Shown here in pieces: positions 43,401 to 46,400 of a stretch of 64,000 bases of DNA; position 1 is the stretch's first letter, and each line of letters opens with the position of its first letter. Both the position numbers and the translations under genes were made by a program. Below the pieces are notes generated by a model. That model searched no databases. It was not told the DNA's origin and saw only the letters and a program-made list of their open reading frames with translations. The DNA comes from Macrostomum lignano (taxonomy: Eukaryota). The stretch covers positions 558,001-622,000 of the forward strand of contig NIVC01000200.1 of the NCBI GenBank assembly GCA_002269645.1, read 5' to 3'.

Positions 43401-46400
43401 GAGACTGGAAGTTCATTAAATAAAAAAAATTGCCGATATGTTCCGTAGCTAACTTTTATCAGCTGATTTTTTGTTACTTATTTAGAATGATTTTATTTCA
43501 GCATAACCCTTCATTACAGTCTTACCTTCTCCACCTTTGCTACTGTCTGTAGCACCACTCTCTTCACCCTCTCTATCCTCTTTACCCTCTCTACCCTCTC
43601 TACCCTCTTCACCCTCTCTACCCTCTCTACCCTCTCTACCCTCTTCACCCTCTCTACCCTCTTCACCCTCTCTACCCTCTTCACCCTCTCTACCCTCATT
43701 ACCCGCCCTACCAATCATTTCAGTTGTTCCAATTGCATTTGTTGGCACCTTTGTCGGCATCAACGGAAACAGTTATTACGCTATTGACATGTAAGTGCGC
43801 AAATATGAAGTAACAATCAGTTTTTAGGCTTTGTGTACACTTTTTATTAAAATAATCAAATTTTTATTTCCAGGTGCTGGACAGCTAGAGAGAATGTGTG
43901 GCTATATGCTGGGCCTGCCATTGGCATTGTGGCGGTGAGAATTTAAGTATTTACAGAAATATCGAATTCTAGCGTTGCTGATTTATTCAAAATCTGAGTT
44001 GTTTAGCTTAGTTAGTTATTTAGTTATTTGGTTAGTTAGTTAGTTAGTTTGTTTTGATGGTTCATTCAATAAATTGAGTCTTCGCAGTAAGCGACTATTT
44101 TTCGGCTACTAGCCAACCGAACAAAACAACCAGCATGCGCACTCTCTCTGGAGAGACTGATAACTATATATTGCAATAATTTTAAATAAATGGGGTGGGT
44201 GCTGCTGAACATTATAAATGGGGGCTGGGGCTGAAACGTACGTATATCCAAATCTCTGATATGAAAGTTACGCGTAGGTGAATGAAAAGTACACTCGTAC
44301 ATGTAAGCCAACTCCTAAACATTCCCCCCTTCCTGACAGAGCAATGTCAGCAACAAAGACCGGAAACACTGAACTTGAGTACCTAGTAACCGAACGGACA
44401 AACTATGACCATAGCAAAAAAAAAACATACAACGCCTGGGAACAGCACGAGAAGCGTGAGGGCTCAAAAGCCAAACTGAAAAGATGTTTCGGCACCCGCC
44501 ACCAAGACTCGCAAATGAAAATAATGAAAATGCGCAAGACCGCAAACTGAAATAAGTTACCACTAAACATCAAAAAATATAAAAATTTGCAACTCAGCTT
44601 AAACTCGCAATTTTAATAAAGTCGAAAATGGTTGACAGAAAAAACCCATCACCGTAACTTAACAGAAACTTCAAACAGCTCAAACTCAAAGGAAAAACAA
44701 ATGCGCCAACTGCGCTCCAAAAAAAATCTGATCCCAAAAAAAACCATGAACAAAAACAGACACAACCAATAATCAAAAAGGCAACGGCTTGAAAAGCCCA
44801 AAACTGGCAGAAAGCCTACTGAACGCACACGATACAGTACAAACAATTTGAAAACTCAACGTAAACTCGGAAAAGTCCGGAAAAGAAAACAAACAGTTCT
44901 TAAGCAAATGATCAACTCCTCTCACTCGAGATAGCACAGTTTGCTCACAGGCCGCACGAATACCGTCCCACCGACCTGGACCTTGGCCACCCGGACTCGA
45001 TTGTCTGAACCCGGGTAGACTTCGACTACTCGTCCCAACGGCCAGTGTCCACGCGGTGAGTCTGCTTTGATGACGAGAACGACATCACCTGGCTGTAAAT
45101 CACGCTGTGGTCCCGCCCACTTGGCTCTCGGCTGCAACCCTGGCAGCCATTCGCGCATCCAGCGTCGCCAGACGTGCCTCACTAGTTCTTGGACGCGCCG
45201 CCACCGCCGCCTCGGGTCATCCGCGACGTCGTCGGGCACATCCGGCGCGAATTGTCCACCAGCTTGACCGTGCAGGAAATGGTTTGGCGTCAGTGGCTCT
45301 TCGTCTCTCGGATTCGCCGATTGATAGGTGATGGGGCGCGAGTTGATAAGCGCCTCCGCTCCAGTGATCGCTGACTGAAGCTCCTCGTCGGTGACATCTG
45401 CGCTGCCCAGAATCGCGTGTAGCGCTCGCTTCGCAGCCCGAATCATCACCTCGTGGGCTCCACCGAAGTGCGGGGCGGCTGGCGGCTGGAAGTTCCACTT
45501 GACTCGCTGCTGGGATGTCTCGCGACTGATCCTTGTCCTGTCCAGCTCCTCCAGAAGTCGCAGTTCATCTGCACCTTTTACAAAGTTGCCACCGTTGTCA
45601 GAATACATAGCCTTGGGTAAGCCACGCCTGTTCACCATTCGGTAGAAGGCGTTCAAGAAAGAGTCCGCGTCAAGGCTGTAGGTCATCTCGAGGTGTACCG
45701 CTCGCGTCTCGAGGCATGTGAACAGCGCCAAATAGCGTTTCTGCCTCTTCTTAAATCGGCCCTGAATAGTGACGAACGGCCCTCCCATGTCGACGGCTAC
45801 GTTCGTGAAGGCTTTTAAGGATCCTGCGACACGGGCATCAGGCAGTGGCGCCATCTGTTGTACGATGGGAGGAGCTTTCTCTCTCTTGCACACAGCGCAT
45901 TCAACCTCCCACTCGCGAATAGCTTCCCGAGCACAGATAACCCAATACTTGGCTGACAGCGCCGCCAGAGTTTGGTTAGTCCCACCATGGCTCTGCTGCT
46001 CGTGATATTGTTTGATGATCAGCTTGGTGATCCAATGCTTCCGCGGCAAAATAGATGGATGTCTTGCTGCAAATGGCGCCTGTGGCCTGAATTTCAACCG
46101 GCCATCCACTCGTAGGACTCCTGCTGCATCACGTACCGGCTGCAAGCACCGCAGCTTCTTCTCGTTCACTGTATCCGTCTTGAACGCTTCCTCCTGAGCT
46201 AACCTTACCAAACGCTCCTCGACCTCCTCGAGCTCATCCACCAACAGCTCACCGCCGCTCCGCTGATACTTCTCCTTCTGACAGTTCCGAATGAACCGCA
46301 ACACCCAAGCGAAGACGCGCTGCAGTCGATGGAAACTAGAGAATCGCTCTGGTTTGAGTCGCCAGCCTGTCTTGTCTTCTTCATCGGTGGTGACCAGACA

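Follow-up and report, generated by a model that had tools for sequence, protein, structure and literature searches.

Both long terminal repeats of a BEL/Pao retrotransposon of Macrostomum lignano carry a probable relic of the host spliced leader

The non-long-terminal-repeat (non-LTR) elements SLACS, CZAR, CRE1/2 and NeSL-1 insert site-specifically into spliced leader (SL) RNA genes, and the SL is there the flanking target DNA. The element described here is a BEL/Pao LTR retrotransposon on the minus strand (51053..44050) of a 64,000-nt stretch of Macrostomum lignano DNA (assembly GCA_002269645.1, contig NIVC01000200.1, positions 558,001 to 622,000 of the forward strand), the whole of which is called the window below. 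Like those elements it is physically joined to SL sequence, but it has LTRs and BEL/Pao domains, the SL lies inside the LTR, and the insertion is in an (AACT)n microsatellite.

SL sequences associated with retrotransposons have already been noted in flatworms. In a survey of 24 parasitic flatworm genomes, 597 SL-bearing loci, mainly associated with LTR elements or long interspersed nuclear elements, were discarded, and integrated trans-spliced retrotransposon transcripts were proposed as their source (Mol Biol Evol 2025, PMC12582326). In S. mansoni, six genes of transposable or retrotransposable elements with an internal SL were explained in this way too, with a warning that assembly chimeras were possible (Sci Rep 2018, PMC5832876). 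These loci resemble the present one in that a DNA-encoded leader without other SL RNA features is tied to a retrotransposon. They are, however, passing remarks on filtered-out loci with partial leaders, in which the position in the element is not given and chimeras are not excluded, whereas here the whole leader, from nt 1 to the ATG, is resolved in the R/U5 region (terminal repeat and unique 5' part) of both LTRs. The novelty claimed in the first-pass annotation of this stretch, that no LTR built around the SL was known, was therefore overstated, since both reports already describe SL with retrotransposons and offer the same explanation. The locus is a clearly resolved case of a phenomenon already noted briefly in flatworms, and what is new is its anatomy: a full-length leader in R/U5 of both LTRs, 13 nt short of the LTR end and beside a primer-binding site (PBS) of the initiator tRNA-Met (tRNA-iMet) type. 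It adds this anatomy to the passing mentions and extends the phenomenon to a genome with the leader of the free-living genus Macrostomum.

Two other systems come close to the locus. In dinoflagellate retrogenes, DNA-encoded SL relics mark retroposed trans-spliced transcripts (Slamovits and Keeling 2008, summarised in PMC3229502). The likeness lies in a DNA-encoded SL that formed the 5' end of a trans-spliced RNA before reverse transcription, and in homology that stops at the splice junction; the dinoflagellate relics belong to host-gene retrocopies, often tandem and truncated at an internal AG by repeated cycles, whereas here a single full-length relic is found inside a replicating element's own LTR. 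In Caenorhabditis elegans, the spliced subgenomic mRNA of the Ty3/Mdg4 element Cer1 is SL1-trans-spliced (PMC3315495), and LTR-retrotransposon transcripts can thus be substrates of SL trans-splicing, as proposed below for the present element. In contrast to the course proposed here, the full-length 8-kb genomic RNA of Cer1 is not trans-spliced, and there is no SL in the element DNA (PMC3315495). Five Bel/Pao families are known in M. lignano from the literature on Macrostomum LTR retrotransposons, and in the papers examined on these elements and on Macrostomum trans-splicing there was no mention of SL in LTRs.

The SL-derived block and the repeats that carry it are placed as follows:

51053..50782, minus strand: 5' LTR, 272 nt, TG..CA ends (direct repeat D6)
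44321..44050, minus strand: 3' LTR, 272 nt, TG..CA ends (direct repeat D6)
50838..50795 (LTR 216-259), minus strand: SL-derived block of the 5' LTR, 37/45, with CC for TT at LTR 232-233
44106..44063 (LTR 216-259), minus strand: SL-derived block of the 3' LTR, 39/45 against the Macrostomum SL, covering the leader from nt 1 through the terminal ATG
44062-44050, minus strand: 13-nt tail AACCATCAAAACA in U5, the last 13 nt of the LTR, with a terminal ...AACA/CA integrase end as in relatives

The minus-strand reading of 44106..44063 is GCCGAAAAATAGTCGCTTACTGCGAAGACTCAATTTATTGAATG, followed by AACCATCAAAACA, which ends the LTR, exactly as it had been quoted in the first-pass annotation. The SL to which the block was likened there was found to be correct. 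The M. lignano SL is CCGTAAAGACGGTCTCTTACTGCGAAGACTCAATTTATTGCATG (PMC5173321); a 45-nt form beginning with GCCG occurs in M. cliftonense and the same sequence, at 43 nt, in M. hystrix (PMC10468722 supplement), and a 35-nt core, CGGTCTC...GCATG, has also been given (PMC8629364). The SL exon was identical across the three Macrostomum species and the two environmental SL RNA genes described below (L005 and L011).

Global alignment of the 3' LTR block with the 45-nt SL gave 39/45 identical columns, 5 mismatches and one 1-nt gap, and 37/45 identical columns were obtained with the 5' LTR block. The longest exact run was 25 nt, the 3' part matched at 31/33, the 5' GCCG and the terminal ATG were kept and the whole leader was spanned, in agreement with the earlier description of the match. 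The number of chance matches expected for the 25-mer in window shuffles was 0, and within the window it was confined to the two LTRs; the window contained no further copy of the LTR or of an SL-like sequence. The 5' 16 nt of the block contained 11 matches to the SL (P = 0.014 for at least 11, against random 15-mers from the window).

The two LTRs were identical at 270/272 positions. The sole differences, at the adjacent LTR positions 232-233 (50822-50821 and 44090-44089), lie inside the block and read CC in the 5' LTR and TT, the SL state, in the 3' LTR. All six differences between the 3' LTR block and the SL were also present in the 5' LTR, which indicates that they predate the present insertion. 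They were clustered, as five fell within the 5' 16 nt and one within the 3' 29 nt (5/16 versus 1/29, Fisher p = 0.017), and a perfect run of at least 25 nt, given 6 differences in 45 columns, had p = 0.033.

Metagenome contigs were scanned with a 22-nt SL core as query, and a second scan was carried out on prokaryotic genome contigs. In the metagenome scan, five contigs of JGI Ga0316592 (L001-L004, L006) started with the SL and carried differing coding sequences after the ATG. They are trans-spliced mRNAs of a macrostomid in a metatranscriptome, and they show the same junction between SL and variable sequence after the ATG as the LTR block. Two authentic SL RNA genes were also recovered. The gene in the metagenome contig L005 (615-725, JGI Ga0302322_100095745) reads GCCGTAAAGACGG...TTGCATG|GTAAGACACCGG... 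and adopts the canonical three-hairpin fold (z = -3.6). Its exon is followed by a GTAAG donor, and an Sm-like ATTTTTAG and two more hairpins are present. That in L011 (1590-1700, JAGQZA010000190.1), with the junction ATG|GTAAG, has an identical exon and differing intron hairpins; it was found on a contig binned as a Flavobacteriaceae metagenome-assembled genome, which is almost certainly mis-binned flatworm DNA.

When the LTR block was locally aligned to exon plus intron of these genes, the homology spanned the first to the last exon nucleotide only. Neither their upstream flank nor their intron (GTAAG, ATTTTTAG, hairpins) had a match in the LTR. Inspection of LTR and leader revealed no GT donor, Sm-like site or hairpins 2-3 after the block, in line with the earlier statement that it is not an SL RNA gene. 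The LTR/leader RNA folded no better than shuffles (z about 0, versus z = -3.6 for L005), and no Rfam RNA gene, tRNA gene or SL gene was found in the window. Since the homology is confined to the SL exon, the source would be a mature spliced leader joined to another RNA and not SL-gene DNA, and the block reads as a copy of the spliced leader, not of its gene. Homology from SL nt 1 to the last nucleotide of the exon is the signature of a reverse-transcribed trans-spliced RNA; because the match coincides exactly with the SL exon, the origin by this route that the first-pass annotation had proposed is well supported.

The position of the block was considered together with the remaining features of the element:

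50779..50764, minus strand: PBS TGGTAGCAGAGCGTGG, starting 2 nt (TC) past the 5' LTR
44172-44164 (LTR 150-158), minus strand: AATATATAG, TATA-like or an AATATA variant of the poly(A) signal (putative role)
44333..44322, minus strand: polypurine tract (PPT) GGAAGGGGGGAA, abutting the 3' LTR on its 5' side
44922..50731, minus strand: broken gag-pol coding region, from the open reading frame (ORF) list, Pfam and tblastn against the gag and pol of the relative L007

Along the minus strand the Pfam order is DUF1759, aspartyl protease, RVT_1, Peptidase_A17, Integrase_H2C2 and DUF5641, which is the BEL/Pao order, and the best protein relatives have the same Pfam set. LTRs, PBS, PPT and domain order all fit, and the element is a BEL/Pao LTR retrotransposon (Belpaoviridae). 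Within the PBS, TGGTAGCAGAG is complementary to the 3' end of the eukaryotic initiator tRNA-Met.

Between the block and the LTR end there are 13 nt, and 15 nt separate it from the PBS. As only these 13 nt are left, with the PBS 2 nt beyond the end, the block cannot belong to U3 and must be in R or U5; the genomic RNA thus carries it at its 5' end. The claim that the SL was fixed in R/U5 was borne out in this way. The TATA-like AATATATAG was located upstream of the block on the element strand, as had been described, at a distance of 44 nt (58 nt start to start). Candidate TATA boxes are TTTATAA (LTR 104-110) and TATATAG (LTR 152-158). AATATA (LTR 150-155) and the GU-rich CTGGTTGTTTTGTTCGGTTG (LTR 188-207) resemble a poly(A) signal with its downstream element, an arrangement that, if real, would place the block in U5. 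The ATG of the block opens a 7-codon upstream ORF (MNHQNIW*) that terminates in the PBS. The block is now followed by the junction ATG|AACC; as this lacks an AG acceptor, no second addition of an authentic SL is possible at the same site. For this reason the suggestion that an SL-like R lets SL-capped RNA finish first-strand transfer did not hold.

Relatives of the element were fetched from public collections: L007 and L009 from one JGI sample, L008 from an ENA contig of 503 kb that includes both LTRs, and L010 from Logan. Their proteins are about 59-65% identical to those of the element. The PBS sequence TGGTAGCAGAG is present in all four, L007 and L009 match the window element over 18-22 nt at the PBS, and the PPT of L007 is identical to that of the window element. 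L009 has 22 nt of PBS plus leader in common with it and a similar gag start. The SL-like block was absent from the LTRs of all four relatives. No alignment of the window LTR with those of L007 and L008 was obtained beyond the PBS, and L009 and L010 gave no significant match to the window LTR or to the SL. Because four relatives that share the PBS lack the block, it may have been acquired in the lineage of the window element. The 8-mer TCGCTTAC near the LTR end of L007 was considered as a microhomology site and rejected, as it was left unaligned by MAFFT and is compatible with chance.

Searched against a collection of 5.8 billion proteins, the pol ORF gave a best match of 63% identity (65% for a partial match), and no real homologue of the gag ORF was found in this collection. 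No further copy of the family was detected in viral contigs, nor any copy of the LTR in the metagenome and genome scans. L007 (1-136 and 6050-6177), L009 and L010 are contigs assembled as pol-LTR-PBS-gag permutations, and the ends of L007 overlap. Tandem or circular forms could give such an order, as could an assembly that ran across identical LTRs.

The analysis shows what the block is, how far it extends and where it lies, and that both LTRs have it and the four relatives do not. The probable explanation is that the block is a DNA-encoded relic of the host SL, fixed in U5 (or R-U5) of the LTR via reverse transcription of a trans-spliced element RNA. We infer a trans-splicing event followed by a strand switch. 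In an ancestral element RNA, the SL would have been spliced in trans to an acceptor that immediately preceded the final 13 nt of U5. Primed at the tRNA-iMet-type PBS, reverse transcriptase (RT) would have copied these 13 nt and then the full 45-nt leader up to the 5' end of the RNA. The nascent minus strand, whose tip would have had no R homology, would then have switched, non-homologously or by microhomology, to a co-packaged or read-through element RNA, and the resulting LTR would be U3-R-(U5 part)-SL-13 nt. This product could have stayed replication-competent because its integrase end was preserved in the 13-nt tail and its PBS had not been affected. The block would thereafter have been inherited as ordinary LTR sequence and have come to differ from the SL by 5 substitutions and 1 deletion. 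Its occurrence in both LTRs with the same six SL differences indicates that it passed through the RNA 5' end. The differences themselves could be attributed either to long inheritance beyond the age of this copy, or to RT errors near the 5' end of the leader, or to an unreported SL variant as source. The present role of the block is most likely none or minor, and we infer a neutral passenger in the 5' leader.

Several points weigh against this explanation. A single element was examined, its two LTRs are of common descent, and no other family copy was found in the collections searched. The absence of the block from four relatives is weak evidence for an acquisition. The required non-homologous first-strand transfer is rare and has left no diagnostic scar here, and the ancestral AG acceptor can no longer be seen. 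The 5' 16 nt match the SL at only 11/16 (P = 0.014), and it may be that just the 3' 25-29 nt were captured, via microhomology at CTTAC. The donor could have been a co-packaged trans-spliced host mRNA and not the element's own RNA. Finally, the uneven decay (5/16 versus 1/29) hints at a constraint on the 3' part, which is not predicted for a neutral passenger.

This last point leads to the possibility of adaptive SL mimicry, in which the block, or at least its 3' 29 nt, would have been selected for a feature of trans-spliced host mRNAs that it lends to the element RNA; translation, stability, escape from silencing and packaging or primer interactions beside the PBS are the candidates. Mimicry for translation or stability, which had been raised in the first-pass annotation, is pure conjecture. 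It is favoured by the match of the 3' 29 nt (28/29, versus 11/16 for the 5' 16 nt; Fisher p = 0.017) and by the run of at least 25 nt (p = 0.033), and the six SL differences older than the insertion suggest that the block has outlived many replication cycles. These statistics are, however, weak and post hoc and come from one lineage, and RT errors near a modified, structured 5' end could also cluster the differences at the 5' side. If the TATA-like sequence at LTR 104-110 or 150-158 is used, the block lies at least 30 nt from the cap and is not a cap-adjacent SL. No feature predicts a trimethylguanosine cap, the region has no unusual RNA structure, the ATG of the block creates an upstream ORF, and the TT>CC change already falls inside the conserved part of the 5' LTR copy. 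Selection for mimicry is on this balance unlikely. The version of it in which an active BEL/Pao lineage keeps a selected block, the conserved 3' 29 nt making its leader resemble host trans-spliced mRNAs, is likewise improbable; SL-dependent translation, protection from small-RNA surveillance and a U5-PBS interaction are examples of the role it would have. If it were true, the family would propagate because it once hijacked trans-splicing, and proof of selection on the 3' part would make this a mobile element that mimics a host mRNA mark.

The same end product could have arisen by copy choice, if RT jumped from the U5 of the element to the 5' end of an SL-bearing cellular mRNA packaged alongside, and back, the element RNA never being trans-spliced. 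Template switches of this kind are a known way for retroelements to pick up host sequence, and the exon-exact boundary would be explained equally well. This route needs two non-homologous switches instead of one, and no host-mRNA sequence was seen between the SL ATG and the AACA/att end, where just 13 nt are found, ending in ...AACA as in relatives; we regard it as quite doubtful. An origin at the DNA level, by insertion into or recombination with an SL RNA gene in the manner of SLACS/CRE/NeSL, or a block that is itself a working SL donor, has the presence of SL sequence as its sole support. It was rejected as highly implausible: it is contradicted by the missing GT donor, Sm-like site, hairpins 2-3 and similarity to the upstream flank of SL genes, the block is duplicated in both LTRs, and the element sits in an (AACT)n microsatellite and not in an SL gene array, with no RNA gene found by Rfam in the window. 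Chance or convergence, or an artefact of assembly or of cDNA contamination, would fit the observation of a single locus and nothing else. It too was rejected, its probability being very slight, since a 25-nt exact match has zero expectation in shuffles and the two LTRs that carry the block belong to an element whose structure is complete, PBS, PPT and TG..CA ends included.

If the block is indeed a relic of a trans-spliced element RNA, a full-length LTR-retrotransposon RNA trans-spliced near the PBS could still be packaged and reverse-transcribed into a viable LTR. The locus would then be a natural experiment on the tolerance of first-strand transfer and of U5. There is also a practical side, as 25-33 nt of near-perfect SL in LTRs will be caught by pipelines that collect RNA-seq reads with the SL or that search for SL genes with BLAST, with a risk of false trans-splice sites at ATG|AACC and of false SL-gene candidates. 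The published search for SL genes in M. lignano required a 100% match to the 35-mer, which the LTR copy, at 31/35, would escape (PMC8629364).

The gag ATG was placed at 50731. Comparison with L007 by tblastn revealed an in-frame TGA at 49766-49768 and three frame changes in gag-pol, near 49100-49046, near 48552-48549 and near 47068-47060. The copy would therefore be defective, unless these disruptions are indel errors of the assembly.

The insertion site is marked by a duplication of its flanks:

51054..51100, minus strand: 47-nt flank directly upstream of the 5' LTR, near-identical to 44003-44049
44003..44049, minus strand: 47-nt flank directly downstream of the 3' LTR, near-identical to 51054-51100

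Within the window the 20-mer AACCAAATAACTAAATAACT was present only at these two flanks. A duplication of about 47 nt is far longer than the 4-6 bp target-site duplication (TSD) of BEL/Pao elements, and a 4-nt AACT TSD is possible but indistinguishable inside an (AACT)n array. The duplication could be attributed to exchange within the microsatellite, to an unusual repair event or to an assembly artefact. The (AGTT/AACT)n microsatellite (51054-52021, about 242 units) abuts the 5' LTR, and the element stands at its edge. On both sides, at unequal distances, C/T-rich tandem arrays were found (43521-43712 and 52515-53276) that are about 77% similar to each other; they consist of (ACCCTCTCT)n and of a 19/119-nt higher-order array of the CCCTCT type.

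In the rest of the window, a scan for promoters and terminators of bacterial type, which is not relevant to this organism, found nothing. Short SL-word matches recurred every 24 nt at about 21200-24050 and every 20 nt at about 59440-60170, and reflect two long tandem arrays, the former of which overlaps a 716-aa open frame at 21285-23435. ORFs of metazoan host type were found at 4645-6697 (minus strand), 9018-10094 (plus), 16494-17303 (plus) and 27110-28393 (plus). Their content comprises a DEG/ENaC channel (two ORFs), a Mago-binding (PYM) domain, a pentaxin domain and a Cys-loop ligand-gated channel, for which the best relative in the protein collection was just 55% identical, a sign that this collection does not cover the host genome. 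On the minus strand at 30162-32144, in a GC-rich (57%) stretch, a 660-aa ORF beginning with ATG matched PNMA (gag-like) and Integrase_H2C2, and may represent a second, different retroelement-derived or domesticated gene.

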